Shown here piece by piece: positions 36,248-64,000 of a DNA stretch of 64,000 nucleotides. The notes beneath the pieces were generated by a model, which did not search any database, was not told where the DNA came from, and saw only the letters and a program-made list of their open reading frames with translations. Source of the DNA: Basidiobolus meristosporus CBS 931.73 (Eukaryota > Fungi > Basidiobolomycota); the NCBI GenBank assembly GCA_002104905.1, contig MCFE01000187.1:1-64000 (forward strand). The letters run 5' to 3'. The number at the start of each line of letters is the position of its first letter. Positions within the stretch are counted from its first letter, which is position 1. The position numbers were made by a program, and so were the translations under genes.

Positions 36248-36302
36248 GAGCCCTCTACTAGTATATGTTTCCCGCAACTCCCATGTTAACTTGATTGACA
36301 CC

Positions 36303-39667: not shown

Positions 39668-39897
39668 TGGGTGCGATAACCTCTGGCAAAAGCTTGCTAG
39701 GAATACTTGGGTTCTGTCTCTAATCTAATGTGAAGGGGAATAAAGCCACAAGCTTGTCAAGGGAAAACTATTGAGCTACAATCCCCAGCTTAGTTGGCGT
39801 CTTAACAAAAGTATATGCTGGGTTCAGCGTCCTTTGAGATGACAATGTACTAAAGCTTCCAAAGTCAAAACAACTGTAAACTCCACCAGCAGGGACT

Positions 39898-41960: not shown

Positions 41961-42905
41961 GATTATTACCTTCAAGTCTGTCATAACTGTGATGAATTTG
42001 CATGTGTACAACAGCCAGGAAAAGTTAGCAAATACTTAGGACAAATGTGCATATGGAGACATCTATGCATTTGGCAGTAAGAAGCTAAGCAGCCCCAATG
42101 TATAGGTAATTGGTTAAGTAATACAAAGTTGGGTTGGACGCCACAAGATACTAATTGTTAGTAGGACAACTTTAGAAAAGTATGCCAGGTTTTTCTGGTT
42201 ACAAGCCAATTTCTGCACCATTCCATACAAAATTCATATAAACAAGAACCTGAGCATACCAATACAGGGGACTAGAGCCCAGCAGGGAGAAGGAATCTAT
42301 TAACTAAGAATCAATAAGTATCTTGCAGATATTCAAGGGGTATTTATGGCAAATGTGGTGGTAACAAAGCATATGCTTGCAAGACTTATATGTTACCAGC
42401 AACACAAGGTATATGGCAACTCTGCAAGCATCACAGTAAAAAGCCATAAACTTGAGGTGATAGAAGTGTGTCAATTGCAGCAGGTGGGCATATATGTAGA
42501 GCTTAGTAAGCAAGATGCCATAGTTTCTCTATTCAACCTATATGTGGAGTACCTACAGTAGTAGTGGGTTAACAAATAAATTGAGGTGATTCTGTTGTGT
42601 TGTATTATCATTAGTTTGGGGCTTGTTCTACAATGTAGAGGCTAATCAACAATATACAACAACTTCCAGTATATTAATACTGAAATAGTTTATTGGGAGT
42701 TTGATATACCGATAGAAGATATAACTTTCACTAATTTCCTCAATCTTGGGCTCAAAATATACTGTAGGCAGTGTTTATCACTTCTACAGCAGTGTTCTGA
42801 CCTTCTGTCGACTAATGGGCTTATTTACTTTTATAGTAACTTTTCCTTATTTGGAAGTCACTTTCCTTTCTGAGAAAATATTTCCTAATATGGAAATTCT
42901 GAACT

Positions 42906-43146
42906 CCCCTTTAACCTAAAGGGGTGTGTTGTAGAAGTCTCTAAAGGGGTTTTTAGACCTAAAGGGGTGTCTAAAGGGGTGTCTTTAGAGTAAAGGGGCT
43001 TCTTGTAGTGGTCTCTAAAGTGGACTTTACACTAAAGGGGTGCCTAAAGGGGCTTCTTTAGAGTAAAGGGGTTTCCTAAAGGGGTCTCTAAAGGGGTCTT
43101 TAGACTAAAGGGGTGTCTTTAGAGTAAAGGGGTTTCTTAGAGGGGA
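42906..43146. repeat. Imperfect TAAAGGGG array (12 exact copies, 2 variants, 1 inverted copy)
   Basis: Exact units at 42917, 42942, 42960, 42972, 42991, 43033, 43045, 43064, 43077, 43089, 43106 and 43125; variants at 43016 and 43138; inverted CCCCTTTA at 42906. Confidence 0.9.
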
Positions 43147-46100: not shown

Positions 46101-47879
46101 ATCGTGGGTGATTTCGGATGTCGGTTTGCATGCTTTCGGAATCCCGCTTGGCCTTTTGCATAGATCACAAAAATCCACCGTAACACAATATCACTTGTTA
46201 GCGTTCGGATGTTGGTTCTTCTTCACCTCCCATGGTAAAAAAGGCACTAAGCCTCTCTATCACATGGGGCCTCACTCGGAGACGCACAAGAATCTTTCCC
46301 CAACAGACAATCAAGTCGGCCTGTGGCAGCTTGGTGAAGCCAGTCTCATAAATATCATCATACCATTAGATCTCCCTGTTGGTCGATATGCAGTTGGGGT
46401 TACGTAGCATACACAGTTAATATAGGTGGCCGGGTGATATTCCATTCACCTGCCAAATCCACCCCCAGAGATTAGAAATGCATGGCTGAGTTGGGTATGC
46501 ACAGGCGTATTTTCCTTAAGCTCGGTGGGTGGTGATCCAGCCACCAATGAGCATTGCCAAAGACCATGACCATCATTGCACCATTTCGCATGACTGGCAA
46601 CAGGTGGCTGATATGTTGGCTGCCATACTTGAGCTCCAATCAGAACTACTCAATAAGTACTAGTGTCCAGTACAAGAAATCTGGATGCATTGTTTGTTGG
46701 ACAACGACAGCCCGGCATTATTTACCTGACATATTGGGATGGATTGGGTTGTGCAAGTGATAGCCCAGTGGAAAGCTAAATTCAGTGAATGTCGGATGTG
46801 GTAGAATCCTAGATTGATGGCGGATAATCGATATGAAGATCGGCTGGGAGGGATTTGCAAATCAATCTCCATATGGGGAGCATTGGTATGGCAGCACCAT
46901 AGTCACGCCCACCAACCTGAGTAGTAGAGCACCGGCAGTTCTACTGCCAAATTTCATGAGTGTTTGTTGCGTTTAGGGTCGACTTGGCAGGATCAGAGGA
47001 GCAGTAGATGCATATACCCGTGAGTGTCTAATTTGACAGGACGGAAATGTACAGTCAATGATGATTCTATGTTATAGTAACTAGAAAGCTAATATCAACT
47101 GAAGGAGGGACGGGATCGTTCGTATCCACTATACAGTTATATCACTTACCGCATCTTATTCAATTAGGATTGGTGTAATGCTCCTGGTTACCATTTGCAA
47201 TCATTCTGTATACTTTATACATTCATTCTGTAAAAAGTATACAGATGGTGCGTTTTCTTTGGTTTTTAGGAAACAGATATGAACCCTTCAAGTGACTTCG
47301 CGGGTCGAGCTGATGGTTTCCAATCAATTAGGCTCTTTGAAATCCAAATACAAGAGTCACTACTAAACTCGCGCAAGCCATAATCAATTCGTACAGTTTT
47401 GTGCTAGACAGTGCTGTAGGCGTACTAGATTATAATATCATATTTGCTAACGCTGATGTGCAGATCATCTCCACATCTTATGGGAATAGAATTGGGATTT
47501 GAGCCTGTGTAATGTTCCAGGTTATTAAGGCCCCTGACCAGTTGTAGTATTCTACCAACGCTGACAGAATGAATGGGTTTTGTTTGGATTTGAGGTAATA
47601 GGAATGGCCCCATCACGATTCATCGATTGACAGATCATGCCAAATACAGAAGTGGTTTGGAAGGTCAGATTATAGATTTTGAGCTATTCTAATGCTTAGG
47701 AAACCAAATTCAAGAATCGCCACCAAGTCTGCATATGGCTCCTAATCATATTTCGCCTAACACGAATGGTACATGTCGTATGGGGCAACAAGTGGCGAAT
47801 ATCCAATGTAGAATAAGCTAGGAGCCAACCCTGGTATCCCAATGGATTGAGAAACATCGGCCGGGGAACCATTCTCAGC

Positions 47880-47886
47880 TATAAAA
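47880..47886 (+). promoter_or_regulatory. Putative TATA box of NRPS2
   Basis: TATAAAA followed by GCCAT, 55 nt before the ATG at 47935; CCAAT motifs upstream at about 47804 and 47840. Confidence 0.6.
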
Positions 47887-47934
47887 GCCATACTCCCAAG
47901 TGTTTTTGTGCACCATCTACTGGAAGTCCCAACA

Positions 47935-50900
47935 ATGAACTCATTGAATACTAGCGTTTGCCAATTCCCACATTTGCTGGCTCGTGAGTCAGAGCAAATT
48001 GCTGCGATGGTTGAGTTTCATGCTAGTGAAATCATAGTCCTAGACTTGAGTTCGATCCACCAGTTTACTGCTTTCCAAGGGGCTGCTGACATTGAAGAGG
48101 CCTTGATAATCGCTACCTGGGTAATTATGCTGAACTCGTATACTGGAAGCTCAGACATTACCTTCGGGACAGGCTTTCCTCATCGAGAATCATCAGGGTT
48201 GTTTTTGAAGGATTTGCGAGTCTTCCAGTCAACTTATGATCAAGAAATCGAAAAACTGTATGTTTGGAGCTGGCTAAAGCATATAGCAAATACCCATATT
48301 CAGGGTGTCAGTTCCAAAGATACTGCCGCCTTCAGTATCCGAGATGCCCTCAATTTCAACACTTACATTATCTTCAATGAAAAAATAGGCTCAATAGATA
48401 TGAGCAATCTTAAGGTATTGTACTATTTACATGAAAGATGCGTTATTATAAATGCTGAAGTTCTCCACTTTGATAAGCAATTTGCCATCTGCATAGAAGG
48501 GTACTTGTGTAAGAGTAGCATGACTATTCGTATGATTTTCGCAAACAGCTATCTCCAACAAGACCACGGGGTGTTACTTGTCGATCAATTTACTCATATT
48601 GCTAAAACACTGCTTAACAATCTTGATGCACCCTTGAATACTCTCAATTGGACTCCTGAAAACGAAAAACACTTATTCTTGACTGAATGGCAGCAAGGCA
48701 AGCCGAATTATGTTCAAGTACTTGATGATAGTTGCATCCATCATCTGATTGAGGAGCAAGTCAAGAGGACACCAAATAGTATCGCCCTTCAATTTGAGGA
48801 CAAAGAATTGGTCACATACTCAGAGTTGAACAAACGGGCCAATAAGCTTGCTCATACGCTGATCCAGATTGGTGTACAACCCGACAACGTGGTACCAGTA
48901 TGCATCGAGAAATCCATCCATATGGTGGTTGCTATCCTGGCGGTCCTTAAGGCCGGGGCTGCCTATGTGCCCCTCGATCCTGAATACCCAAAAGATCGGA
49001 TTCATTTCATCATACGAGATACAAATGCTAGTGTTTGTATCACCACAAGCAATTTGCAGAGGATGTTTGCTGAGGGACAAACCCTTCGATCGCTGACGGT
49101 GGATGAGTTCGATTTCTGTGGTGACGAGCGGTCCGAGTTGAACCCCGTCATCCCTGGGTTGAAGTCCTCAAATCTTTGCTACCTAATCTTCACCTCAGGC
49201 TCCACCGGAAAGCCCAAAGGTGTTATGCTAGAACACCGTTGCGTCGTCAATTACGTAGCTGCTCACCAGAAGATTCTGGATTTGTCCCAGGATGACCGGT
49301 TCCTCCAGTTCGCCAACTACACCTTTGATGCGTCCATACTTGATCTGTTCGTGAATCTGACCACTGGATCCCGTCTATGCTTGGCATCGAAGAACAATTT
49401 GCTCACAGATCTCCCCGGAATGATGAACCTGATGAAGGTTACTGCAGCACAGCTGACCACAACCGTGGCTTCCCTGGTGGATCCGAGCTCCGTGCCTACG
49501 CTCAAGCTACTTCAGCAAGGAGGTGAGATGCTCACCAAATCCGTAAGGGATGCTTGGGCCAGCAAAGTCAAGTTGCATAATGGCTACGGCCCGACCGAAA
49601 CCGCAGTCTACACCATCATCAAGCAGTCATTGAAGCCATCGACCTCCTGTGCCAATATCGGGTGGCCCATTGGCCGCAGCAAAGTTCTCATCCTGAATGA
49701 TAGGTTGGAGCTGATCCCATTGGGGGCAGTGGGTGAGCTTTGCATTGGTGGACCACAGCTTGCTCGAGGATATCTCAATCGACCTGATCTGACGGAAAAG
49801 AGCTTCGTCAGCTCCCCATTCAATCATGGCGAACGACTGTACAGAACAGGGGATCTGGGAAGATTCAACCCCGATGGCTCGATCACCATCCTTGGGCGGA
49901 AGGATAATCAAGTCAAGTTGAACGGGCTGAGAATAGAAATAGAGGAAATAGAGCATGTATTGAACCAATCCCCAGAGGTTAGCCGCGTATCGGTCAGACT
50001 GTTGAATCGGAAGTCGAAGACATCCAAGGTGAGTAAAGTGCTGGTGGCTTTTGTAACTTTCGTCAACAAAATGTCCGATGAAGAGTCAGTATCTGTTCTT
50101 GAGTTGACAAGCTGCCCAGAAGTGGGTCAAGTACAAGAGTCTGTTCGAAAACAGCTTCCACCATATATGGTGCCTACAGTGTGGGTGCCGTTGACAAAAA
50201 TGCCCATCAATACTAGCGGAAAGACCGACTTGAAGACTTTGGAACTCTTGTACACAAGCCTCGAAACTGCTCAAGACGTCAAAGAGGCCAAAGACATGCC
50301 CACCTCCGCGATGGAAGTGCTACTGCAAGAGGCTTGGGGTGAGGTGTTGAATGTTGAAAAGTCTTCCATCGGCACTGGTGACTCCTTCTATCATTTGGGG
50401 GGCGACTCGATCTCCGCCATCCAAATATCCGCCCAATGCCGTCAAAATGGGGTGGAGGTGTCTGTCCAGAGCATATTGCAACACCCCACCATCCGTCAGC
50501 TGGCAAACTATGCTCGGTTCACGACATTGGCGCTAGAGAAGCAGAGCATAGAGGAGGATGAGGAGGAGGATTGGAGTGACATTCCGTTCACCCCAATCCA
50601 GCACCAGTTCTTTGGTGTCACCCAGCCTGAAGTCAATCACTTCCATTTGTCGTGGTTGGTGAGTGTCAGGCATCCAATCGAGCTACCTGCACTGAGAGGT
50701 GCGCTATTTGAGCTGATTGGCCATCACGATATGCTCAGGACTCGTTTCACCCAAGAACTAGGTCGCTGGAGACAATGGCTGGCTTCCAATGAACAGACTA
50801 ATTTCGAGGTGCAGCGGCATCGAGTCTCTGGTGTTGAAGAGCTGAAGTCGAGTGTACTGAAAACACAACGAAGCCTCAACGTTGAGACCGGGCCAGTATC

Positions 50901-53900
50901 ATCGTTTGTGATCTACGATCTACCATCCGGTGAGCAGCTGCTATTCATGACCATCCATCATTACATCATTGATCTTGTTTCGTGGCGTATCTTTTGGGAG
51001 GATCTGGAAAAGCTGCTGAGCGGACAGTCCTTGTCATACAAAACACTGTCATTCAGAAAGTGGAGCAAGCTGCTACAAAAGCACGCAGAGTCCTTGACGA
51101 GTGAGGACTGGCCGCAACAAGCGCTAATCGAGCCGTTGGATATTGATATGTCCAAGCTTTCTCTGAATACCATGGAAACGGTAGAAACATTATCGTTCAC
51201 GCTGGATAGTGAGTACACTGCCCTCATGTTCGGTAGAAGCAATGATGCTTACGGGACGGAGGCCGTTGACTTCATGCTTGCCACTCTCGCCACCTCATAC
51301 TGTGATGTGTTCCAGACCGATTCGATTACCTTTGCAACGGAAGGTCACGGACGTGAGCCATGGGATGACTCCATCGATGTGTCCCGGACAATTGGATGGT
51401 TTACCTCCATTTATCCAGTCACCATCCAGCGCAAGCGTGGGGATTCTCTGATTGACGTACTGAAGCAGACTAAAGATACCCGTCGAGCAATTCCTAACCA
51501 CGGATTGGACTATGGACTTCTTCGCTATCTAAACTCGGAGCTATCCTCTAGATATAGTAGCGATCGCTTCCAGGTTGGCTTCAATTATTTTGGACGCTTC
51601 CAGCATCTGGAGAAGGGTCGCTCTCTGTTCCAGCAAGCTGCGGAGCAGTACACGTTCGATTTGAATATGATTGGTCCCAAGTGGAGAAGAATGAATGCTA
51701 TCGAGGTTGAGGTCACCGTACAACGTGACAATCTGAGTGCCTCGATATCTTACAGCAACCAGCTACATCATGAGAAGCAGATCAGCCAATGGCTGCAGGC
51801 ATGGAAGAGGGACTTGATGGAGGCAGTCCAGATTAGTGGCAACAAGAAGAAGAGAGAACTGACCGTCTCAGACATCCCGTTGCTCTGCCTCAATGCTCAT
51901 CAATTGCACGGACTGTTGGAAGAGGTTGCTGCAAAATGTGGCGAAGAGTTTGTGCAAAACATAGAGGACATGTATCCCTGTTGCGCAATGCAGGAGGGCC
52001 TGATCGTCGGGAATGCCCGCTCAGCCTCATCGTATCATGTTCAAGATGTGTACACTCTGCCGGATGGAGTGGACGAGGAACAACTTCTCTCAGCCTGGAG
52101 ATCCACAGTCAATGATCTACCCATACTGCGCACCGTGTTTATCGAGAATTCTTACTCCTCACCCACGTTAGGAGCATATCTCCAAGTCGTTCTGCGACAT
52201 GTTGATGTCGATTTCCAGCGCATATATCCAGAGAGTCAGGATATCGAAGATGCTGCACTGAACAAATATCTGGAAGCTGATGTAGCCAAAGGATTTCCGC
52301 TTGGCCGGCCCAACATACGATTATGCTTGATACAGGGTGAGAAGAATCGGATGATTATCAGTCGTCATCATGCTATCAATGATGGTTGGTCGGACAAAAT
52401 CACCATGGCCTACTTGGAAGCCGTCTTTAACAGTACTTCAAGGCCAGCAGTGATCCCATACAAGGAGTATATCTCCTATTGCGTTAAGCAGAATGGCTCA
52501 TTGAGCAACGAAGAGGGTGCTGAGTACTGGTCAACCTATCTAGCCGGTATTGATGCCAGCATCTTTCCTAAGCTTGGTGAGACAAATGCCCGTGCTGGTC
52601 ATCACCAAGTTGTGTTCAGATCACAAATTCCCATGCAGGTGCTGAAGGACTTTTCGAAGAAGGCCGGTGTAACCACGCTTACCTTATTACAGGCAGCTTG
52701 GGGAATGATATTGCAGCCCTACTATGGAAAGGAGGACTTCGTGTATGGCGTGCTCACGAATGGCCGCAATATTTCCATGAAGCAGATCAATCACGTAGTT
52801 GGTCCGTGCATCAACACCACCCCATTAAGGATTCAGTGTCATCCAAGCACCAAGATCATGGATTGGCTAAGATCACTGCATCAAAGCATGGTGGCCCGGA
52901 TTCCATACGAGCATTGTGGTCTAAGACTGATCAAGCAATGGTGCAAACAGAGGAATTCCCAGGTCGGTTTTGATGCTATTCTCAACTTTCAGTTGTCCGA
53001 GAAAGATGATGCAAGGCAAAAGGTGACCTTCGAAATGGAGAGAATAATCGAGCCCACTGAGTATAGGCTTTGTCTTAACGCATGGAAAGAAGGGGATAAG
53101 CTCGCCTTCAGGTTGGACTTTGACAATGCTACACTGACCAGCCACCTGGCCAATCATTTACTAGATCGCTTGGACGCTGTGATTGGTGCCATTGCTGTTG
53201 CTGATGGTGAATCTACCGTTGCTGACATTCCATATATGTCAAATGTGGAAAGCAGCTTGATCCAGTCATTCGCTACTGGTTGCAATCAAGTCGATCCCAC
53301 GTTGGAATGTTTGCACCACTTATTTGAAAAGCAGGTGGCAAAGACACCCAACAACATTGCCATCCGTTATGAGAGTGATCAGCTTCTTACCTACAATGAC
53401 CTTAACAAGCAATCGAATCGGTTGGCCCACTACCTGGTTAGTCAAGGAGTTGGACCAGAGTCAATTGTGATGTTGTGTCTGGACAAATCGGTAGAAATGA
53501 TAGTGGCTATGCTGGGAGTGCTCAAAGCTGGAGGCGCGTACGTACCAATAGACCCAGCAAGTCCTGTTGAGAGATCGAGATTTGTACAGAGGGAAACAAA
53601 GGCATCGATTGTAATAACTAAAAGCTTGCTCAAGGAGAAATTCGAAGACATCGCTCTGGTGTTAATTGACAGCGAAATAAGTGTATTCAGTACCTATCCA
53701 TTTGATAATCTACGCAGCAGGGAAGTCACCGAAAAAAATCTATGCTATATATTGTACACCTCAGGGTCGACGGGAACACCGAAGGGTGTGATGCTGGAGC
53801 ATTCTTCCGTGGTCAGTTTCATTCATTCAATCCACCAAAGGTATCAACTTACCGCTGAAGACTCGATTCTGCAGTTTGCCAACTACACCTTCGACGCATC

Positions 53901-56900
53901 TGTATTTGAAATCTATGCACCGCTGGCTATTGGCGCGTCTGTGGTCATGGCACGCAAGGATTATCTGCTTACGAATCTAGAGGATTGGGTCAACAGACTG
54001 AGGGCAACATTTTTGATGCTGACCCCCACCATTGCAACCATGGTCGACCCACTCAAGGTGCCTTCGGTGAAGCACCTGATGTTCATTGGTGAGATGCTGA
54101 CAACCACCGCGCGCAACATCTGGTCACCTCATGTTGAGATCAGTAATGGCTATGGCCCGACTGAATCCACTGTTCTCATGACAGTCAACACTCGGATGGA
54201 TTCAGCCACATCGTGCTCGAATGTCGGACTACCCGTTGGTAACAACAGAATATACATTCTTGGTGCTGACCGCCAACCGGTGCCACTTGGAGTGGTTGGT
54301 GAACTCTGTGTAGCTGGTCCTCAATTAGCTCGGGGCTATCTTAATAGACCTGATCTCACTGGGAAGGCATTTGTCCCTGGTCCATTTGTGTCTGAGGAGC
54401 GCCTGTACTGTAGTGGAGATCTTGCTCGATTCAATGCGGATGGATCAGTGGAGCTGATTGGGAGAATAGACAATCAGGTCAAGATTCACGGATTGCGGAT
54501 TGAATTAGATGAGATAGAGCATGCCCTTCACGAATACCCCAGAGTGGCCAGAGCATGTGTAATTCCACTGGTCACTGATGCGGAGACGAATCATAAATCA
54601 TTGACTGTCTTTATTACATTCCATGATCTAATTGACTCTAGTCTCGCATTATGTACACCTGGGGGAAATAACAGTGTATTACTTGCTTCCTATGCCAAGG
54701 AGGCCAGATCGCTTATCAGGAAGAAACTACCCTCCTATATGATTCCTAACATCTGGGTGCCACTCAATAATATGCCCTTCACGGCTAGTGAGAAGATTGA
54801 TCGAAAAATGCTGGTATCTCTTTTTGCCACTTTTTCCAAAGACGATTTGATGCTTTTGAGTATTTCTGATGACGTTAGTCACGTTGGGCCTAGAACAGTA
54901 GTGGAGCAGAATTGGACGAAACTCTGGTCATCGGTGCTCAATATTCCTGCCAATGCTATAGGTGTTCATGATTCGTTCGTTAATCTTGGAGGTGACTCTA
55001 TTTTGGCCATCAGATTGGTGGGGGCTGCTCATAAGGCTGGATATGCCTTAACCGTACAGGATCTATATACTTATCCAACCATAGCTGAGATTGCCGAGAC
55101 TAGTGTGCTTGTTGATTCGGATATATTGGCAGCCAAGACCATTGCGCGGTATTCACTTCTCAACCTTGATCCAGCTCAACTTGAATACCTGCTTGAGTGT
55201 GACTTACGCCCAAATGGCATAAACTATGATGACGTGGAAGACATGTATCCATGTTCACCTATGCAAGAAGCGCTGATGGCCCTGAGTATAAAAGACCAAT
55301 CCAGCTATCTCACTCGGCAAGTTTACAGATGTGGACCTAATGTGGACATCGAACGACTTCGTGCTTCCTGGCAAACCGTTATCGAGGCCAATCCTATTCT
55401 ACGAACAGTCATTATTTTCAGTACCTCTGGTATTACGCATCTCAATGGTATACAAGTTGTACTTCGTGGTGAAGGTATGGAGTGGAATGTCCATGAGTAT
55501 GAAGATAATGCCTCTCTGGAAAGCAGTCTACCTCAAGCTTTAGCTGAAGACAAATCAAGAGGAATTCGCCTTGGTCAGCCCCTGATCCGGTTCAGTCTAC
55601 TGAAGTCCAAGGAAACTACTACATACCTCATATGGACTATTCACCATGCACTGTATGATGGTTGGTCCATGAATCATATAATAACTGATGTTATTACAGC
55701 ATACCAGGGCCACGACCTGTCGGTCAGACCATCTTACAGTGAATATATCAAATACCTCATGAATCAAGACAAGAACGAATCTCTTTGGTTCTGGAAAAAT
55801 ACACTTGATTCCACCACTGAGACTTACTTAGTGAGAGGTATACCTACTCCTGGAGCGACATCACTGCCCTCCAGGGTTAGTGAAAAGCTTCAGGTTGATT
55901 TCTCATCCATAACCAGCGTTCATAATATTACAGCAGCCAGCATTGCTTACTTGGCCTGGGCACTTGTGCTAAAGGTCCATACTGGTAGTTCTGATGTGGT
56001 ATTTGGAGTGGTGAACTCCGGAAGAAGTATTCCCCTTCATAACATTCAAGATATTTGTGGACCGTGCATCACGACGTTACCAATCCGTGTTACTTTCTCG
56101 GATAACGTGTCGCTTTTGGAAATACTACAGTCGATCCATGGTACGCAGATACAGCAATACCGCTACCAATCCATCAGCCTGCAGGAAATTCTCGAGCATT
56201 GCCACCACGTGGGAGAAAAAGCCCTTTTTGATTCCCTTTTGGTAGTTCAAAACATCCCTCAGAAAAGTGAGGATGAAGGATTGGCTACAATCGGACTCCA
56301 TAAATCAATAGCCTCAATGCCAATTGACTATCCAATTGTTATGGAAATCAATATTACTGGAACCATCCACAGTGTTGATCTCACTTATGACGAGCAAGCG
56401 GTGACTACGTTTGAAGCAACTTGGATAATGAAGCACTTCGTGGAAGCTATCAAAGTGATTCTACATAATCTTAACAGCACAGTGAAAAGTGTTCGCCTAT
56501 TGACATGGGAGGAAACTTCAATAATGCAGAATTGGAATCTGATTGAACAAATACAAAACAAGTTGTGTTGTATCCATGAGTTATTCGAGCAGCAAGCACT
56601 CCTCCATCCAGATAATTGGGCTCTTCAATTTGAAGATGAGGTTTCCGTAAGCTATTCAGATTTGAATCGAAGAGCTAACCAGCTGGCTCATCATTTGATC
56701 AAGCTTGGTGTCCGTCCAGAGTCAATGGTGCCCTTGTGCCTTGACAAATCTGTCGAAATGGTAGTGGCAATGCTTGCTGTTCTCAAGGCTGGTGGTGCTT
56801 ATGTTCCCCTTGACCCGAACAATCCAGTCGAGCGCAACAGATTCATCCTTGCCGAGACAAATGCACAGGTTGTAGTGACACTGGATGTGTACAGATCCAC

Positions 56901-59900
56901 TTTCGACACAGCGACTGTGGTGCTCCTTGACTCCGACCTGGATCGTATTCGCACAAATCCCGAGGATAATCCCGAGGTCACTGGCTTGAGTAGCTCGAAC
57001 CTTTGCTACGTTCTGTTCACCTCTGGCTCAACCGGAACACCGAAGGGAGTGATGCTAGAGCACGCCGCGGTGGTTAGCTTCATTCACGCAATCCAACAAG
57101 AGTACGACTTCAGCCCCAAAGACTCGATACTGCAGTTCGCCAACTACACCTTCGATGCTTCGGTGTTCGAGATATACGTTCCCCTTGCCATTGGAGCTTC
57201 CGTAGCTATGGCACGAAAGGACTACCTACTCACGGATCTTGAGGAATGCATCAGGGAGCTGAGAGCAACATTTTTGATGCTGACCCCTACAATTGCTACC
57301 CTGATTGACCCACTTGAGGTCCCATCGGTACGGAACCTGATGTTCATAGGGGAGATGCTGACAACCACTGCACTGAACAAGTGGTCGCCGTATGTCGACC
57401 TGAGCAACGGTTACGGGCCGACTGAGTCGGCAGTCCTGACGACTGTCAACACGCATATGAGCTCGACTACCTCATGCTCGAATGTAGGCAAGCCAATCGG
57501 AAACAATAGGCTCTATGTTCTCGGTGACGACAACTACCCTGTTCCGTTCGGAGTGGTGGGTGAGCTTTGTGTTGCTGGATCCCAGCTCGCTCGGGGCTAT
57601 CTGAACAGACCTGATCTGACGGATAGCGCGTTCATCACAAGCCCGTTCGTGTCGGCAGAACGTCTGTATAAGACTGGGGACCTTGCTCGATTCAATAGTG
57701 ACGGATCGGTGGAGCTGGTTGGGAGAAAAGATAACCAGATCAAGATTCATGGGCTGAGAATCGAGTTGGATGAAATCGAGCATGCTCTCCATCAGCACTC
57801 CAAAGTCGCCAGAGCGTGTATTGTTCCTTTGGTCACTGACAAAGCCACTGATCACAAATCACTGGTTGCCTTTGTGACTTTCAACGACCTCACTGACAGC
57901 AACTCACCGGTTGGTCTGATCGAGGAAAGTAACGACCAGAAGGTTGTAGAGTACTTCAAGGAGATCAAGTCGCTTGTCCGAAATAAGCTGCCTACTTACA
58001 TGATGCCCAGTACATGGGTTCCTGTGAGTAGAATGCCTACCACAACGAGTCAGAAGACGGATCGAAAGAGTCTAGCTGCACTGTATGCATCCGTGGATAA
58101 GGAGGATTTGATGAAGTGGAATCATTCTGACGCCTCTGGCCACGTTGGAGCAAGAACAACAATGGAGGAGAGCTGGGCGGAGCTCTGGTCGGCGGTTCTC
58201 AAGATCTCTCCAGATACGATTGGATCGCACGACTCTTTCTTCAGTCTCGGAGGTGACTCTATCCTAGCCATCAGGCTGGTGGGTGCTGCTCATAAGGCTG
58301 GGTTCACGCTGACAGTCCAGGATCTATATTTACATCCTACTATTGCCGAACTGGCATCCACCTGTCTCCCTCTGGGGCCAGAGATCATGGACACTAGACC
58401 TGTGGAGAAGTATTCCTTGCTCAACCTTGATCTTGAGCAGCTTGGCTATTTGATGGAGCACGAACTGCCCCAGCATGACATTATGCCTGACGATGTCGTT
58501 GACATCTACCCCTGCTCTCCGATGCAAGAAGCGCTTGTGGCTCTGAGCCTACAAGACAGCTCGAGCTATGTCAGCCAGCTTGTGTACAAGTGTGAAGGCA
58601 ACGTGGACCTGGAGCGACTTCGCGCCGCCTGGCACTCGGTGATTGAAGCAAACCCCATTCTTCGAACAGCGATCTTGTTCACCACTAGTGGCTTTGCTCA
58701 TCTGAATGGCCTACAGGTTGTTCTTCGTAGCAAGAGCATAGAGTGGGACGTTCAGGAGTATGAGGATGCCACCTCGCTTGAAAACAGCTTGGCTCGAGCT
58801 TTGGAAGCTGACAGGTCTAAAGGAGTATCTGTGGGGCAACCACTGACTCGGTTCGCTTTGCTGAAGACCGCAGGCCCGAATGCATACCTCGTATGGACCA
58901 TTCATCATGCCTTGTACGATGGCTGGTCCATGAATCACATCGTGTCGGATGTAGTGGCTGCCTATCAAGGTCATGATTTGCCGGCCAGACCACCGTACAG
59001 CATGTACATCAACTACCTGTTAGACACGGACAAGAGTCAAGCCATCAAATACTGGCAAGAAACCCTTGGCTCGGCAACCCCTACTCATTTGGCCCGTAGT
59101 TCTCCCACTGCAGCGGAGACTCAGTTGCCGTCGACAATTGTGGAGAATATCCAGGCGGATTTCAGGTCACTTGCAAGCGAGCATAACCTGACGGTAGCCA
59201 CCATTGCGTATTTAGCGTGGGCCCTAGTGCTGAAGTGTCACACTGGTAACCCAGATGTAGTGTTTGGTGTGGTGGATTCCGGAAGAAGCGTTCCTCTCCA
59301 GCATGTCCAAGATATATGTGGGCCCTGTATCACGACATTGCCCATGCGCATCAATCTATCGGATACTCAATCCCTTTTGGATGCTCTAAAATTGATTCAG
59401 AGTTCCCTGACACATCAAAAACTATACCAGTCAATTGGTTTGCAAGATATCCTCAAGCAGATTGGTATGGCGGCTGAAAGCTCGCTGTTTGATACACTCT
59501 TGGTAGTTCAAAACATCAACTTAGATAATGATGCCACAGACTTGACTTCCATTGGGCTGCAACAGTCAGCAACTTCGATGCCAATTGATTACCCTGCCCT
59601 AATTGAAATCAGTTTGAAAGGGTCCAATCTGCAGGCGAGTCTCACTTACCAAACCCAAATATTTACGGAATTTGAAGCAACATGGATTGCCAAGCACTTT
59701 GTTGAGGCGATGAGGTTGATACTACGTGATAGCAGCGCATTGGTTAAAGATGTAAGCATTAGGACTGAGGAGGAGATAATATCAATCAAAAGATGGAGTA
59801 CGGCTGGCTCTGTCAAGAATAGTTCCGAATTTATTCACGAGTTGATTGAGCAGCAAGCCTTACTTCGCCCGGAACAGGTTGCAATTCAATTTGAAGAGAC

Positions 59901-62900
59901 TGAATATGTTACTTATGGCGAACTCAACTGCAGAGCTAACCAGCTGGCTCATCATTTGATCAAGCTTGGTGTCCGTCCAGAGTCAATGGTGCCCTTATGC
60001 CTTGACAAATCTGTCGAAATGGTAGTGGCAATGCTTGCTGTTCTCAAGGCTGGTGGTGCTTATGTTCCCCTTGATCCGAACAATCCGGTCGAGCGCAACA
60101 AGTATATACTCAACGAGATTAGTGCTCAGATTGTGCTGACTAGTGACCAGCATAAGTCGGCTTTTGAAAAGCAAGTCCTGGTACTGGTTGACAGAGATGA
60201 GCAAATGATTGGACATTACCTTACGAGTAACCCTGAAATTAATGGACTGAGTAGCTCGAGCCTTTGCTATGTACTCTTCACTTCAGGGTCTACCGGTATG
60301 CCGAAGGGAGTCGTGCTAGAGCATTCTTCCGTGGTCAGTTTCATTCATTCAATCCACCAAAGGTATCAACTTACCGCTGAAGACTCGATTCTGCAGTTTG
60401 CCAACTACACCTTCGACGCATCTGTATTTGAAATCTATGCACCGCTGGCTATTGGCGCGTCTGTGGTCATGGCACGCAAGGATTATCTGCTTACGAATCT
60501 AGAGGATTGGGTCAACAGACTGAGGGCAACATTTTTGATGCTGACCCCCACCATTGCAACCATGGTCGACCCACTCAAGGTGCCTTCGGTGAAGCACCTG
60601 ATGTTCATTGGTGAGATGCTGACAACCACCGCGCGCAACATCTGGTCACCTCATGTTGAGATCAGTAATGGCTATGGCCCGACTGAATCCACTGTTCTCA
60701 TGACAGTCAACACTCGGATGGATTCAGCCACATCGTGCTCGAATGTCGGACTACCCGTTGGTAACAACAGAATATACATTCTTGGTGCTGACCGCCAACC
60801 GGTGCCACTTGGAGTGGTTGGTGAACTCTGTGTAGCTGGTCCTCAATTAGCTCGGGGCTATCTTAATAGACCTGATCTCACTGGGAAGGCATTTGTCCCT
60901 GGTCCATTTGTGTCTGAGGAGCGCCTGTACTGTAGTGGAGATCTTGCTCGATTCAATGCGGATGGATCAGTGGAGCTGATTGGGAGAATAGACAATCAGG
61001 TCAAGATTCATGGATTGCGGGTTGAACTCGATGAGATAGAACACGTACTCAACCAACATGCACAAGTGGCTAGAGCATGTGTCATACCGTTGGTGACAGA
61101 TCCCAACACAAATCGTAAATCGATTGTAGCATTCTTAACATTCTGTGGAATGGAGGGTTCCCTTGCCGATCTTTCATTACTCACTAATCCTGAACTATCA
61201 TTCGTTCGGCCATTTTTGGAAGAAGTGAAAGAAATAGCCAGACGACAGCTACCATCCTATATGGTGCCAAATCTTTGGTTGCCTCTTAATGCTATTCCAA
61301 TCAACACCAGTGACAAAACAGATCGTCGTAAACTAGAAGGCCTCTTCAAGTCTTTCAATCTGGAGGAAATCGTAAATGGATCAAACAATGAAAGCCATCA
61401 TGAGAGTCAACAGATAACGCCCTTGGAGAAACAAATCCAAAAAATATGGTCTGATACTTTAAATATACCTGTTTCCAGCATCAGTATTGAAGATACATTC
61501 TATCAATTGGGAGGAGATTCCATTTCAGCCATTCGGGTGTCGTCATTGAGTCGTCAAAATGGTCTGTCCCTCTCAGTGAAGCAAATAATGCAGAATCCAA
61601 CCATTCGCTCACTTGCCTCAGTGGCTGCTGCGTTGGATCCATCCAAGATCATCAGCCTGCCTAGCACTAGTGGTGATCTGATTCTTACCCCAATTCAGAG
61701 ACGCTTCCTGTATACTCCTCAGGAAAATATGAATCACTTCAACCAGTCATGGCTACTGAAGCTGCGTGATACCACAACGAAGGACAGGCTATCGCAAGCC
61801 GTTAATGCTCTGATGAGCCATCATGATCTGCTTCGCAGCCGCCTTTCCTGCACAGACGGGGCTTGGAAGATGAGGATTGTATCCGCAGAGGAAGCGCCCT
61901 TCCAGGTTCATCAGATGCAAGTGAGGTCGATTGACGACATGAAGGGTCACATTCATCAGCTGCAACGTAGCCTCGACCTGATGTCAGGGCCTATGTTTCA
62001 GTTTGCACTCTACGAGCTGGAGGATAGATCACAGCTGCTATTCATGACCGTTCACCATTTGATAGTGGATCTGGTTTCGTGGCGTATCATATGGGAAGAT
62101 TTGGAACAGCTGCTTCAAGGGAAGCAGTGCGGCTACAAGTCGATGAGCTTTATGCAGTGGAGCGCTATGCTCAACGAGTATGCCCAAGAGCTTGGCATGG
62201 ACATGTGGCCGTCTCAGGAGATTTCCGAGCCGATAGTGAGAGATGCAGCTCTCCTGGATGCGAACAGAATGAGCTCAAGCAAGTCTCTTGCTTTCACCCT
62301 TTCGGTCGGCCAAACAGAGCTGCTCTTTGGAAAGTGCAACCTTCCATTTCAGACTGAGGCGACGGATCTCATGATCTCCTCACTGGCTATTGCTTACTGC
62401 AAGGTGTTCAATGCTGGTAGCATGACCATCGGCATGGAAGGGCACGGAAGGGAGACCTGGCGTGATGGAATCGATGTGTCGAGGACTGTTGGCTGGTTCA
62501 CCACACTCTATCCACTGGTGGTGGAGATTTCTGAAGATTTGGATCAACTGAGTGTTCTGAAGCGAGTCAAGGACCAGCGTAAGCTTATGCCGGGCAACGG
62601 GCTTGTGTATGGATTACTACGGTACATGAGCAACAATCCGGAGAATCGATTCAAGGATGATGTGATCCAGATAGGGTTCAACTATTTAGGTCGTTTTCAG
62701 CAGCTAGAGAGCAAGAACGCATTTTTTCAGCCTGTTGACGCCACTTACGATTTTGATCAGCTTCATATCGGCAATGAGTGGAGAAGAGATCATGTCTTCG
62801 ATGTCACTATAACTGTTGAGCATGATTGTCTTAAGGCTGAGATTGTGTTCAATACCAGTTTGCACACTGAAGAAATAGTATCAGAATGGCTCTTCAAATG

Positions 62901-64000
62901 GGATGAGGCATTAGGCAACATGATTGAATCTTGTGCTCAGATCGATACTATCGAGCATACCCGAAGCGACTTTTCATTAGTTAAATTTAACGAAGCAGAG
63001 TTCAATCTTTTCTATACTCAAACTCTCCCAGGCGTGGGTGTTGATCCTAAATTCGTTGAAGATATTCTTCCATGCACCCCACTGCAAGAAGGCCTCATTG
63101 CTGGTATGTTCAAGAATGCCAACTACTACCATATCCAGCAGCAGCTTGATCTTGTTGGTGAATTCGACCCGATCAAATTCCAAAGCACTTGGGAAACCAT
63201 GATTCGGGATCACCCAATTCTGCGCACTATCTTTGTCGAATCGACGATTAGTGGCACGCATAATAATTTCTTACAGCTCGTGATGAAATACCGCAAGCCT
63301 TGCTGGTCATACAAGAAATGTGCTCACAACTCCCTGGAAAAGACTGTAGCCACGCTATTAGCAGAAGACAAGTCCTTTACCTTCGATTTGGGCCTGCCAA
63401 CGATGAGGTTTACACTGCTGGAGACTGATCAGAACTATCGGATGCTATTCCTTAGCTGGCATCATGCTATACTCGATGCAACAGCATGGGATCTTATCTT
63501 ACAAGACTACTACAATGTTTATAATAGCCAATCTCGTGTGGCAACATATCCATTTGCCAAATTTGTTGAAGATCTTTATAGTAAATCAGAAGTGGATATT
63601 GCCAAAGAGAAATCCTATTGGCAAGGAAAATTCTCTCAGGCCAGTCGGTCTCCATTCCCTACTCTTGGAGCACCCGAGGACCCAGCTCCCGAAATGAGAC
63701 GTGTTGAAGGCAGAATTCATATACCTATGGAGAAGATAGCTCATTACGCTCAACAACTAAGAATCACTACATTAACGCTGGTCAAAGCTGCTTGGGCCAG
63801 TATTTTGCGAGAATACACTCAAAATGACGATGTGATATTCGGATATGTCGTCCATGGAAGAAGTGGAGACTTGGAGGGGATTTCAACCATTGTTGGTCCG
63901 TGTATTAACACCCTACCGTGCCGCATCATCTGTAACCACCGATCAACTATTGCAGAGTGGCTAATGCAAATTCATGTGGATTACACATCAGCCCTGTCAT
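47935..64000 (+). CDS. NRPS2: multimodular NRPS, 3'-partial (at least 5355 codons); C0-A-T-E-C-A-T-C-A-T-C-A-T-E-C...
   Basis: ATG AAC TCA is homologous to the NRPS1 start (MNSLNTSVCQFPHLL versus MNSPKAGVCQFPHLL). The frame agrees at 48601, 53761 and 63961 (LMQIHVDYTSALS). No plus-strand ORF from this frame is in the track, which implies no stop before the window end. T motifs near 50400, 54990, 58250 and 61510; E motifs HHYIIDLVSW and HHLIVDLVSW; last C motif HHAILDATAW at about 63460. Confidence 0.92.
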   Translation, partial: MNSLNTSVCQFPHLLARESEQIAAMVEFHASEIIVLDLSSIHQFTAFQGAADIEEALIIATWVIMLNSYTGSSDITFGTGFPHRESSGLFLKDLRVFQSTYDQEIEKLYVWSWLKHIANTHIQGVSSKDTAAFSIRDALNFNTYIIFNEKIGSIDMSNLKVLYYLHERCVIINAEVLHFDKQFAICIEGYLCKSSMTIRMIFANSYLQQDHGVLLVDQFTHIAKTLLNNLDAPLNTLNWTPENEKHLFLTEWQQGKPNYVQVLDDSCIHHLIEEQVKRTPNSIALQFEDKELVTYSELNKRANKLAHTLIQIGVQPDNVVPVCIEKSIHMVVAILAVLKAGAAYVPLDPEYPKDRIHFIIRDTNASVCITTSNLQRMFAEGQTLRSLTVDEFDFCGDERSELNPVIPGLKSSNLCYLIFTSGSTGKPKGVMLEHRCVVNYVAAHQKILDLSQDDRFLQFANYTFDASILDLFVNLTTGSRLCLASKNNLLTDLPGMMNLMKVTAAQLTTTVASLVDPSSVPTLKLLQQGGEMLTKSVRDAWASKVKLHNGYGPTETAVYTIIKQSLKPSTSCANIGWPIGRSKVLILNDRLELIPLGAVGELCIGGPQLARGYLNRPDLTEKSFVSSPFNHGERLYRTGDLGRFNPDGSITILGRKDNQVKLNGLRIEIEEIEHVLNQSPEVSRVSVRLLNRKSKTSKVSKVLVAFVTFVNKMSDEESVSVLELTSCPEVGQVQESVRKQLPPYMVPTVWVPLTKMPINTSGKTDLKTLELLYTSLETAQDVKEAKDMPTSAMEVLLQEAWGEVLNVEKSSIGTGDSFYHLGGDSISAIQISAQCRQNGVEVSVQSILQHPTIRQLANYARFTTLALEKQSIEEDEEEDWSDIPFTPIQHQFFGVTQPEVNHFHLSWLVSVRHPIELPALRGALFELIGHHDMLRTRFTQELGRWRQWLASNEQTNFEVQRHRVSGVEELKSSVLKTQRSLNVETGPVSSFVIYDLPSGEQLLFMTIHHYIIDLVSWRIFWEDLEKLLSGQSLSYKTLSFRKWSKLLQKHAESLTSEDWPQQALIEPLDIDMSKLSLNTMETVETLSFTLDSEYTALMFGRSNDAYGTEAVDFMLATLATSYCDVFQTDSITFATEGHGREPWDDSIDVSRTIGWFTSIYPVTIQRKRGDSLIDVLKQTKDTRRAIPNHGLDYGLLRYLNSELSSRYSSDRFQVGFNYFGRFQHLEKGRSLFQQAAEQYTFDLNMIGPKWRRMNAIEVEVTVQRDNLSASISYSNQLHHEKQISQWLQAWKRDLMEAVQISGNKKKRELTVSDIPLLCLNAHQLHGLLEEVAAKCGEEFVQNIEDMYPCCAMQEGLIVGNARSASSYHVQDVYTLPDGVDEEQLLSAWRSTVNDLPILRTVFIENSYSSPTLGAYLQVVLRHVDVDFQRIYPESQDIEDAALNKYLEADVAKGFPLGRPNIRLCLIQGEKNRMIISRHHAINDGWSDKITMAYLEAVFNSTSRPAVIPYKEYISYCVKQNGSLSNEEGAEYWSTYLAGIDASIFPKLGETNARAGHHQVVFRSQIPMQVLKDFSKKAGVTTLTLLQAAWGMILQPYYGKEDFVYGVLTNGRNISMKQINHVVGPCINTTPLRIQCHPSTKIMDWLRSLHQSMVARIPYEHCGLRLIKQWCKQRNSQVGFDAILNFQLSEKDDARQKVTFEMERIIEPTEYRLCLNAWKEGDKLAFRLDFDNATLTSHLANHLLDRLDAVIGAIAVADGESTVADIPYMSNVESSLIQSFATGCNQVDPTLECLHHLFEKQVAKTPNNIAIRYESDQLLTYNDLNKQSNRLAHYLVSQGVGPESIVMLCLDKSVEMIVAMLGVLKAGGAYVPIDPASPVERSRFVQRETKASIVITKSLLKEKFEDIALVLIDSEISVFSTYPFDNLRSREVTEKNLCYILYTSGSTGTPKGVMLEHSSVVSFIHSIHQRYQLTAEDSILQFANYTFDASVFEIYAPLAIGASVVMARKDYLLTNLEDWVNRLRATFLMLTPTIATMVDPLKVPSVKHLMFIGEMLTTTARNIWSPHVEISNGYGPTESTVLMTVNTRMDSATSCSNVGLPVGNNRIYILGADRQPVPLGVVGELCVAGPQLARGYLNRPDLTGKAFVPGPFVSEERLYCSGDLARFNADGSVELIGRIDNQVKIHGLRIELDEIEHALHEYPRVARACVIPLVTDAETNHKSLTVFITFHDLIDSSLALCTPGGNNSVLLASYAKEARSLIRKKLPSYMIPNIWVPLNNMPFTASEKIDRKMLVSLFATFSKDDLMLLSISDDVSHVGPRTVVEQNWTKLWSSVLNIPANAIGVHDSFVNLGGDSILAIRLVGAAHKAGYALTVQDLYTYPTIAEIAETSVLVDSDILAAKTIARYSLLNLDPAQLEYLLECDLRPNGINYDDVEDMYPCSPMQEALMALSIKDQSSYLTRQVYRCGPNVDIERLRASWQTVIEANPILRTVIIFSTSGITHLNGIQVVLRGEGMEWNVHEYEDNASLESSLPQALAEDKSRGIRLGQPLIRFSLLKSKETTTYLIWTIHHALYDGWSMNHIITDVITAYQGHDLSVRPSYSEYIKYLMNQDKNESLWFWKNTLDSTTETYLVRGIPTPGATSLPSRVSEKLQVDFSSITSVHNITAASIAYLAWALVLKVHTGSSDVVFGVVNSGRSIPLHNIQDICGPCITTLPIRVTFSDNVSLLEILQSIHGTQIQQYRYQSISLQEILEHCHHVGEKALFDSLLVVQNIPQKSEDEGLATIGLHKSIASMPIDYPIVMEINITGTIHSVDLTYDEQAVTTFEATWIMKHFVEAIKVILHNLNSTVKSVRLLTWEETSIMQNWNLIEQIQNKLCCIHELFEQQALLHPDNWALQFEDEVSVSYSDLNRRANQLAHHLIKLGVRPESMVPLCLDKSVEMVVAMLAVLKAGGAYVPLDPNNPVERNRFILAETNAQVVVTLDVYRSTFDTATVVLLDSDLDRIRTNPEDNPEVTGLSSSNLCYVLFTSGSTGTPKGVMLEHAAVVSFIHAIQQEYDFSPKDSILQFANYTFDASVFEIYVPLAIGASVAMARKDYLLTDLEECIRELRATFLMLTPTIATLIDPLEVPSVRNLMFIGEMLTTTALNKWSPYVDLSNGYGPTESAVLTTVNTHMSSTTSCSNVGKPIGNNRLYVLGDDNYPVPFGVVGELCVAGSQLARGYLNRPDLTDSAFITSPFVSAERLYKTGDLARFNSDGSVELVGRKDNQIKIHGLRIELDEIEHALHQHSKVARACIVPLVTDKATDHKSLVAFVTFNDLTDSNSPVGLIEESNDQKVVEYFKEIKSLVRNKLPTYMMPSTWVPVSRMPTTTSQKTDRKSLAALYASVDKEDLMKWNHSDASGHVGARTTMEESWAELWSAVLKISPDTIGSHDSFFSLGGDSILAIRLVGAAHKAGFTLTVQDLYLHPTIAELASTCLPLGPEIMDTRPVEKYSLLNLDLEQLGYLMEHELPQHDIMPDDVVDIYPCSPMQEALVALSLQDSSSYVSQLVYKCEGNVDLERLRAAWHSVIEANPILRTAILFTTSGFAHLNGLQVVLRSKSIEWDVQEYEDATSLENSLARALEADRSKGVSVGQPLTRFALLKTAGPNAYLVWTIHHALYDGWSMNHIVSDVVAAYQGHDLPARPPYSMYINYLLDTDKSQAIKYWQETLGSATPTHLARSSPTAAETQLPSTIVENIQADFRSLASEHNLTVATIAYLAWALVLKCHTGNPDVVFGVVDSGRSVPLQHVQDICGPCITTLPMRINLSDTQSLLDALKLIQSSLTHQKLYQSIGLQDILKQIGMAAESSLFDTLLVVQNINLDNDATDLTSIGLQQSATSMPIDYPALIEISLKGSNLQASLTYQTQIFTEFEATWIAKHFVEAMRLILRDSSALVKDVSIRTEEEIISIKRWSTAGSVKNSSEFIHELIEQQALLRPEQVAIQFEETEYVTYGELNCRANQLAHHLIKLGVRPESMVPLCLDKSVEMVVAMLAVLKAGGAYVPLDPNNPVERNKYILNEISAQIVLTSDQHKSAFEKQVLVLVDRDEQMIGHYLTSNPEINGLSSSSLCYVLFTSGSTGMPKGVVLEHSSVVSFIHSIHQRYQLTAEDSILQFANYTFDASVFEIYAPLAIGASVVMARKDYLLTNLEDWVNRLRATFLMLTPTIATMVDPLKVPSVKHLMFIGEMLTTTARNIWSPHVEISNGYGPTESTVLMTVNTRMDSATSCSNVGLPVGNNRIYILGADRQPVPLGVVGELCVAGPQLARGYLNRPDLTGKAFVPGPFVSEERLYCSGDLARFNADGSVELIGRIDNQVKIHGLRVELDEIEHVLNQHAQVARACVIPLVTDPNTNRKSIVAFLTFCGMEGSLADLSLLTNPELSFVRPFLEEVKEIARRQLPSYMVPNLWLPLNAIPINTSDKTDRRKLEGLFKSFNLEEIVNGSNNESHHESQQITPLEKQIQKIWSDTLNIPVSSISIEDTFYQLGGDSISAIRVSSLSRQNGLSLSVKQIMQNPTIRSLASVAAALDPSKIISLPSTSGDLILTPIQRRFLYTPQENMNHFNQSWLLKLRDTTTKDRLSQAVNALMSHHDLLRSRLSCTDGAWKMRIVSAEEAPFQVHQMQVRSIDDMKGHIHQLQRSLDLMSGPMFQFALYELEDRSQLLFMTVHHLIVDLVSWRIIWEDLEQLLQGKQCGYKSMSFMQWSAMLNEYAQELGMDMWPSQEISEPIVRDAALLDANRMSSSKSLAFTLSVGQTELLFGKCNLPFQTEATDLMISSLAIAYCKVFNAGSMTIGMEGHGRETWRDGIDVSRTVGWFTTLYPLVVEISEDLDQLSVLKRVKDQRKLMPGNGLVYGLLRYMSNNPENRFKDDVIQIGFNYLGRFQQLESKNAFFQPVDATYDFDQLHIGNEWRRDHVFDVTITVEHDCLKAEIVFNTSLHTEEIVSEWLFKWDEALGNMIESCAQIDTIEHTRSDFSLVKFNEAEFNLFYTQTLPGVGVDPKFVEDILPCTPLQEGLIAGMFKNANYYHIQQQLDLVGEFDPIKFQSTWETMIRDHPILRTIFVESTISGTHNNFLQLVMKYRKPCWSYKKCAHNSLEKTVATLLAEDKSFTFDLGLPTMRFTLLETDQNYRMLFLSWHHAILDATAWDLILQDYYNVYNSQSRVATYPFAKFVEDLYSKSEVDIAKEKSYWQGKFSQASRSPFPTLGAPEDPAPEMRRVEGRIHIPMEKIAHYAQQLRITTLTLVKAAWASILREYTQNDDVIFGYVVHGRSGDLEGISTIVGPCINTLPCRIICNHRSTIAEWLMQIHVDYTSALS
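53797..54498 (+). repeat. 702 bp near-identical copy of 60319..61020 (specificity core of NRPS2 A2 and A4)
   Basis: Offset 6522; runs from GAGCATTCTTCCGTGG just after the A3 motif to GGATTGCGG in the A8 motif; the flanks are diverged. Confidence 0.92.

Follow-up and report, generated by a model that had tools for sequence, protein, structure and literature searches.

In bacteria, nonribosomal peptide synthetases (NRPSs) are diversified mainly by exchange of the core of the adenylation (A) domain, a replacement in which the linker between the condensation (C) and A domains and the interface between the A subdomain (Asub) and the carrier (T) domain are kept (Baunach 2021, PMC8097286). From the fungal genus Basidiobolus, cyclic pentapeptides containing D and L residues are known (PMC10964425; PMC11376311), and one protein of Basidiobolus meristosporus, 351909, has an entry as an NRPS in Table 3 of Tabima 2020 (PMC7466969). 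The present analysis concerns the gene of that protein, here called NRPS2, which lies at the right end of a 64,000-nt stretch of contig MCFE01000187.1 of B. meristosporus CBS 931.73 (this whole stretch is referred to as the window), together with its sister gene NRPS1, found 11.7 kb upstream on the same strand. The part of NRPS2 inside the window is the 5' two-thirds of the gene. With a probability of roughly 0.82 the frame is an intact-looking nuclear gene of this early-diverging fungus, encoding a linear NRPS of seven modules and carrying a history of recombination. As a gene it is of a familiar kind and not new to the catalogues, although its public model is wrong. A preliminary description of this DNA had called it missing from the list of open reading frames (ORFs); it is absent from that list because the program leaves out frames that run off an end, and a public model of the gene exists.

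Reading frame, domain order and public model of NRPS2

The frame of at least 16 kb that had been announced as running off the window is indeed present. Frame 0 of the plus strand is free of stop codons from 47851 to the window end at 64000 (5383 codons), the chance of which, (61/64)^5383, is practically zero, and from the first ATG at 47935 it continues for 5355 codons to the window end; an in-frame stop was looked for by translating the frame, and none was met within the window. Position 47935 is very probably the true start of NRPS2, since its context is common to the ATG of NRPS1 at 11063. Both start codons share GAAGTC(C/T)CAACAATGAAC, with 17 of 18 positions identical, and the homology to NRPS1 reaches 22 nt 5' of the NRPS2 ATG. 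The domains were mapped by phmmer with seeds taken from the protein itself (E denotes an epimerisation domain), and are as follows.

47935 to 64000, + strand: NRPS2 coding sequence, first 5355 codons, no stop or intron in the window; corresponds to K493DRAFT_351909 and runs past the window
47935 to 48747, + strand: N-terminal 271 aa, degenerate remnant of the C-terminal half of a C domain (PF00668, 24.7 bits, below the cut-off of 30.6)
48748 to 50352, + strand: A1, code DALQQGGVYK, protein 100% identical to NRPS1 A1
50323 to 50511, + strand: T1 carrier, LGGDSI
50578 to 51873, + strand: E1 epimerisation, HHYIIDLVS (TIGR01720, 111.6 bits)
51955 to 53304, + strand: C2 condensation, after E1, HHAINDGWS
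53323 to 54942, + strand: A2, code DAFMMIGVLK
54913 to 55101, + strand: T2 carrier, not in the public gene model
55228 to 56553, + strand: C3 condensation, after T2, HHALYDGWS
56584 to 58203, + strand: A3, code DAFMMIGVLK, protein 95% identical to NRPS1 A5 and 97% to NRPS2 A6
58174 to 58362, + strand: T3 carrier
58489 to 59817, + strand: C4 condensation, after T3, HHALYDGWS
59845 to 61464, + strand: A4, code DAFMMIGVLK, a chimaera with the core of A2 and a C-terminal flank nearest to NRPS1 A3/A4
61435 to 61623, + strand: T4 carrier
61675 to 62970, + strand: E4 epimerisation, HHLIVDLVS (TIGR01720, 94.5 bits)
63049 to 63999, + strand: C5 condensation, after E4, HHAILDATA, cut by the window end after 317 residues

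Behind the degenerate C remnant, which has 61-71% nucleotide identity to NRPS1 over the N-terminal 271 aa, phmmer gave the order A1-T-E-C-A2-T-C-A3-T-C-A4-T-E-C5, and the only Pfam families in the window part are AMP-binding, AMP-binding_C, PP-binding and Condensation. The four modules and the fifth C domain of the preliminary description are confirmed by this order (A-T-E, C-A-T, C-A-T, C-A-T-E and C5), with the remnant placed before them. The four A domains (PF00501, 538-541 bits per half) keep motifs A3, A8 and the A10 lysine and are each followed by a PF00550 carrier domain with the LGGDSI motif; no HHxxxD, LGGDSI, A3, A8 or A10 motif of the window part is damaged. The NCBIfam model TIGR01720 (cut-off 74.2 bits) recognises E1 and E4, and none of the four C domains of the window part scores above that cut-off. 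The C domains that follow an E domain read HHAINDGWS (C2) and HHAILDATA (C5), those that follow a T domain HHALYDGWS (C3 and C4). As only two E domains pass TIGR01720, the stereochemistry D-L-L-D predicted from the domains is correct for the window part of NRPS2; for the whole gene it is too short, the prediction being seven modules of D-L-L-D-D-L-D.

A word search with an NRPS2-specific region led to the GenBank model K493DRAFT_351909 (JGI protein 351909, 7961 aa), which lies on the window frame in five blocks with 100% identity. As its start the model uses an ATG at 48710 that is out of frame; it enters the frame at 48799, with loss of residues 1-288, and it excises the stretches 52282-52335, 52798-53634, 54559-56184 and 63895-63954. 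All four are in frame, free of stops and code for conserved residues of C, A and T domains, including the GPCINTLP.R motif (in 6/6 aligned C domains), all of T2 and portions of C2, A2 and C3, half of C3 being among the sequence removed. The window part of the protein amounts to 5355 residues as a continuous frame and to 4215 in the model, whose domain order is a nonsensical C(partial)-A(partial)-A. Because the excised stretches have these properties and the order makes no sense, K493DRAFT_351909 looks mis-spliced and the continuous frame appears to be the gene.

Past the window the frame was followed in the public protein, where three more modules and an E-TE end were found (TE, thioesterase): residues 4216-7961 hold the rest of C5, A5-T-E, C-A6-T, C-A7-T-E and a C-terminal PF00975 thioesterase which, in this protein model, scores 93 bits and reaches 362 bits against the TE of NRPS1. 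With this outer part taken from the public protein, NRPS2 would consist of seven modules in the order C-remnant-A1-T-E, C-A2-T, C-A3-T, C-A4-T-E, C-A5-T-E, C-A6-T and C-A7-T-E-TE. The shortness of E5, C6 and C7 in the model is attributed to further introns that are probably spurious.

The ten pocket positions of the A domains were read from an alignment anchored on FDxS, LTPT, xxGE, NxYGPTE and the A10 lysine. NRPS2 A1 and NRPS1 A1 have the same code, DALQQGGVYK, and module 1 is nearly identical in the two genes, which at the level of the pocket bears out the common residue 1 that had been proposed. The earlier reading of A2, A3 and A4 also stood, DAFMMIGVLK being obtained by motif anchoring in these three domains as in NRPS1 A5. 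Beyond the window, the public model gives DAFMMIGVLK for A6 and DAMVMGGVAK for A5 and A7. The other codes of NRPS1 are DAFMLGAVMK (A2), DAIMVGAVAK (A3 and A6) and DPIAVGAVAK (A4), and thus between the colinear domains NRPS1 A3 and NRPS2 A4 the pocket changes from DAIMVGAVAK to DAFMMIGVLK. DAFMLGAVMK and DAFMMIGVLK resemble published leucine codes. With one code in three consecutive modules, a peptide related to that of NRPS1 but distinct from it is therefore a fair prediction.

NRPS1 and the exchange of sequence between and within the two genes

The three exons of NRPS1 (11063-36247) form a single gene, which stays open through all of its 8346 codons after removal of two introns. The full gene has six modules, D-L-D-D-L-D, where D-L-D-D had been assumed, and ends in T-E-TE with a thioesterase of Pfam family PF00975. 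Its parts are the following.

11063 to 24016, + strand: NRPS1 exon 1, with C-remnant, A1-T-E, C-A2-T, C-A3-T-E and the start of C4
24017 to 24082, + strand: NRPS1 intron 1, 66 nt, GTAAAC...CTACTAAT...TAG, phase 0, inside C4
24083 to 28675, + strand: NRPS1 exon 2, with the end of C4, A4-T-E and the start of C5
28676 to 28753, + strand: NRPS1 intron 2, 78 nt, GTTGGA...TTACTAAT...TAG, phase 0, at the homologous site of C5
28754 to 36247, + strand: NRPS1 exon 3, with the end of C5, A5-T, C-A6-T-E-TE and the stop codon

The three exons had been seen as three upstream ORFs of one frame, with breaks about 370 residues into two C domains, and the locus had been treated as if its ORFs were bacterial. 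It is fungal: the in-frame stops of NRPS1 fall in canonical introns, and what lies between the exons are spliceosomal introns of 66 and 78 nt. Alignment to the spliced C5 protein of NRPS2 leaves out exactly 22 and 26 codons, both times at the EATE/YPL site. These two short introns, together with the pol gene of a Ty3/gypsy chromovirus in the same window, place the locus in a eukaryotic setting. A bacterial operon as explanation of the three ORFs was rejected because the breaks fall inside C domains and not between modules. Reassignment of stop codons, considered for the ORF-poor spacers and the stops of NRPS1, was likewise rejected, as no reassignment opens more long frames. Both introns occupy the same EATE/YPL site of consecutive C domains, in phase 0, and have lengths divisible by three. 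The intron seems to have been copied along with its module, which suggests that it is older than the module duplication. Word searches that returned NRPS2 and many relatives gave no public model of NRPS1 among proteins of 1373-9371 aa; NRPS1 may be unannotated or split into smaller models.

Modules 1, 2, 3, 4, 5 and 6 of NRPS1 correspond in colinear order to modules 1, 2, 4, 5, 6 and 7 of NRPS2, module 3 of NRPS2 being extra. The synonymous divergence (dS) between the genes is 0.93 in the N-terminal part (omega 0.37) and 1.5 in the A2 region (omega 0.11), and outside their common tracts the two are old duplicates under purifying selection. NRPS2 would then be an old tandem paralogue of NRPS1, both having probably been reshaped by non-reciprocal homologous recombination. 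That recombination has taken place between and within both genes, as the preliminary description proposed, is plain from the tracts they share.

48596 to 53582, + strand: inter-gene conversion tract, equal to NRPS1 11715-16701
53797 to 54497, + strand: core of A2, 100% identical in nucleotides to the core of A4 (other copy 60319 to 61019)
60319 to 61019, + strand: core of A4, second copy of the identical A-core tract
56671 to 59520, + strand: module-3 block, A3-T3 and most of C4, 92.7% identical to NRPS1 29102-31951 (module 5)

The inter-gene tract is 4987 bp long and contains 31 differences and no gaps (99.4% identity, dS 0.014). It spans the end of the C remnant, A1, T1, E1 and C2 and reaches ~86 residues into A2, and its borders are sharp against flanks of 60-75% identity. 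A very recent conversion of 5 kb between the genes would explain why A1-T-E-C2 is nearly identical in both.

The second exchange lies within NRPS2. The cores of A2 and A4 are identical over ~700 nt and 235 aa, from LEH just past motif A3 to KIHGLR at motif A8, in flanks of 40-60% identity. The C-terminal flank of A4 is nearest to NRPS1 A3/A4 (54%), which are the A domains of D modules, and its N-terminal flank is nearest to other modules (~70%), not to A2. A very recent copying of the whole A-core (A3-A8) between A2 and A4 may have brought an "L-module" pocket into an epimerising module. The module-3 block, when set against NRPS1 module 5, shows stretches of 97-100% identity with diverged patches between them, and the protein of module 3 is near-identical to that of module 6 outside the window, with exact runs of 421 and 270 residues. 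This extra A-T-C unit could have been copied from the lineage of module 6 and NRPS1 module 5. The identical codes of A2-A4 thus have a twofold origin: A3 obtained its code with a copied module, A2 and A4 share theirs through the copied core. In modules 3 and 4 of NRPS1, a diverged pocket region lies between blocks of 100% identity.

Similar tracts were noticed between the neighbouring D modules of NRPS2. T4-E4 (61492-62676) is equal to T5-E5 (residues 4907-5301 of K493DRAFT_351909) over 395 residues and the start of C5 to that of C6 over 61 residues, and modules 4 and 5 of NRPS2 show the same kind of concerted evolution as modules 3 and 4 of NRPS1.

Conversion between paralogues and duplication of modules are familiar processes. 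The pair had been called a diversifying system caught in the act, and the core copy in A2/A4 and the extra module 3 agree with this description, whereas the most striking signal, the 5-kb tract of 99.4% identity, makes the two genes more alike.

Long repeats in NRPS genes are a classic source of mis-assembly, and near-identical tracts might be artefacts of assembly or polishing in genes that are really uniformly diverged. This was checked over 47701-53700 (6 kb) in the contigs of two short-read runs, X1 and X2, which possibly come from the same project as the assembly. Over that region the contigs have no indels relative to the assembly. They fork exactly at the tract borders: one stop lies at 48625, k-1 beyond the start of the tract, the other at its last common base, 53582. 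Of 24 alternative letters within the tract, 23 are the NRPS1 letter. The word depth per contig, itself weak evidence, is ~107-121 in the unique flank and ~170-250 in the tract, or about twofold. Since the contigs end at the tract borders and carry NRPS2 or NRPS1 letters where the assembled copies differ, the reads fit two near-identical copies. Moreover, 31 scattered differences would have been lost under cross-polishing, and an artefact is very improbable. A further run, X3, which bears another organism label (27 Mb of contigs, its kind guessed), contains pieces of the tract and 57 nt of NRPS2-specific sequence. At 52595 it has a private C>T substitution, and one of its contigs, of depth 9, lacks 1 nt at 52711, which can be an error, another strain or RNA.

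Origin, activity and predicted product

In Table 3 of Tabima 2020 (PMC7466969), 351909 is a candidate for horizontal gene transfer (HGT) with its best hit in cyanobacteria, a label that rests on the lack of fungal hits. A recent acquisition of a bacterial-type assembly line would also agree with the lack of introns in the 16 kb of NRPS2 and with A6-T-E-TE of NRPS1, for which the best matches outside Basidiobolus are bacterial at 29-34% identity. In addition, release by TE and E domains are more frequent in bacteria. However, dozens of Ascomycota NRPSs match NRPS2 at 29-33% and score above the bacterial matches at 27-28%, and absence of fungal homologues with bacterial best hits no longer describes this protein. 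In a midpoint-rooted FastTree of 143 A domains, which is a small and biased sample and concerns A domains only, the 13 A domains of the two enzymes all belong to a clade (SH 98) made up of Basidiobolus alone, which lies outside the bacterial one (SH 99) and, with weak support, next to Ascomycota. The two spliceosomal introns of NRPS1 at homologous sites, probably copied along with a module, and the several paralogues of this family in B. meristosporus and B. ranarum also speak against a recent bacterial source, and we consider recent transfer unlikely. The elongation A domains of the pair are each other's closest kin, followed by domains of a B. ranarum protein, and the modules therefore seem to have multiplied within the NRPS1/NRPS2 lineage. 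The starter A1 is orthologous across five Basidiobolus NRPSs (SH 100). The published HGT label of 351909 deserves to be re-examined. Other calls of "no fungal hit" in Table 3 of Tabima 2020 (PMC7466969) may need the same check.

Several points weigh against an intact seven-module gene with an active product. The 3' third of NRPS2 is known only from a public model that is demonstrably mis-spliced inside the window, and the borders of E5, C6 and C7 in that model are unreliable. Fungal codes predict substrates poorly, so that "same residue" means the same pocket only, and the codes were read by motif anchoring and not via a solved A-domain structure. The A-core now present in A4 precedes an E domain and, further on, a C domain that is adapted to a different residue, and might be inactive. 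Runs X1 and X2 may be the source data of the assembly itself. Among the runs matching the NRPS2 stretch none is on record as RNA, and the text of Tabima 2020 (PMC7466969) gives no expression value for 351909. Furthermore, the known Basidiobolus peptides are cyclic pentapeptides, with no hexapeptide or heptapeptide reported (PMC10964425).

On this evidence one of the two genes could be a decaying or silent duplicate that conversion keeps intact-looking, with a single family of peptides made. The 5-kb tract demonstrates that conversion is able to overwrite large parts of a gene, the core swap could have broken module 4, and both the lack of RNA among the runs on record and the absence of an NRPS1 model among the proteins of 1373-9371 aa searched would be in keeping with silence. 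Nevertheless, the 5355 stop-free codons of NRPS2 include ~9 kb for which the window contains no near-identical donor, omega is 0.11-0.37 where conversion has not reached, all catalytic motifs are intact, and NRPS1 is likewise open over its 8346 codons once the introns are removed. Decay of one copy is accordingly regarded as quite unlikely, and two intact-looking genes are preferred.

From its domain order, NRPS2 would assemble a heptapeptide of D-L-L-D-D-L-D. Positions 2, 3, 4 and 6 would be chosen by the one pocket code DAFMMIGVLK and are probably one hydrophobic residue, positions 5 and 7 would be set by the other common code, DAMVMGGVAK, and position 1 would be the same residue as in the product of NRPS1. 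The terminal thioesterase would free the peptide, probably as a macrocycle. We put forward only tentatively, at somewhat less than even odds, that both genes are active and that the locus is a living eukaryotic case of the recombination rules of bacterial NRPSs which yields two undescribed D/L peptide families. If this were true, the fungus would make one peptide of six residues and one of seven, the latter with four like residues, the insertion of an A-T-C unit would have turned a hexapeptide line into a heptapeptide line, and an A-core would have been copied into an epimerising module within the last few mutations. The pair would then offer field-tested fusion points for the engineering of fungal NRPSs.

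Surroundings, significance and comparison with known systems

Outside the two genes, the window contains one recognised element and two long spacers.

2 to 3088, + strand: Ty3/gypsy chromovirus pol, a 1028-codon open frame from the left edge that looks intact, with reverse transcriptase, RNase H, integrase zinc-binding and core, SH3 and chromodomain
3089 to 11062: spacer of 8 kb
36248 to 47934: spacer of 11.7 kb

The spacers have a GC content of 37-43%, compared with 45-50% in the genes. Neither holds an ORF of more than 185 aa, and no Pfam family was found in the three spacer ORFs searched; tblastn gave no remnants of NRPSs or retroelements in either, and multi-exon genes may lie there. The only spacer repeat is one of 390 nt with 77.7% identity (36597-36972 and 38907-39297).

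For one of the largest biosynthetic genes of Basidiobolus the public annotation can now be put right. In the deposited model the true start, one carrier domain and half of two further domains are absent; its sister gene is apparently unmodelled, so that genome-mining counts and product predictions made from the deposited models are wrong for this locus. The locus also supplies dated and sharply bordered natural exchange units of fungal NRPSs, namely the A-core from A3 to A8, A-T-C and A1-T-E-C, evidence of this sort being less plentiful in fungi than in bacteria. Conversion and A-core swapping can be seen here still at work in an early-diverging fungus, as a clear case of a known evolutionary route and not of a new system, and the understanding of how NRPSs work is left unchanged by it.

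NRPS1 and NRPS2 are alike in strand, start context, N-terminal C remnant, E-TE end, A1 code and colinear modules. NRPS1 differs from NRPS2 in having one module fewer, two introns and other pocket codes at positions 2-4 and 6. The ACV synthetase of penicillin and cephalosporin producers presumably resembles NRPS2 in starting with an A domain that has no working starter C domain before it and in its T-E-TE end, and differs from it in having three modules. No A domains of zygomycetes were placed in the ACV clade by Tabima 2020 (PMC7466969). Further members of the family in Basidiobolus are K493DRAFT_377413 and the B. ranarum proteins K7432_005451, K7432_001523 and K7432_010984, which share the A clade of NRPS2. 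These Basidiobolus NRPSs have 40-53% identity, the orthologous starter A1 and in some cases a terminal TE, although none of the four is a high-identity orthologue of NRPS2.

A described parallel is the A-core exchange of bacteria (Baunach 2021, PMC8097286). As in that case, the unit exchanged in NRPS2 lies inside the A-core with its borders at conserved core motifs, and the acceptor A4 keeps its native C-A linker, Asub and Asub-T interface. Unlike the cases of Baunach 2021 (PMC8097286), NRPS2 is eukaryotic, the swap took place within one gene, the two copies are still 100% identical in nucleotides, and the acceptor module carries an E domain.

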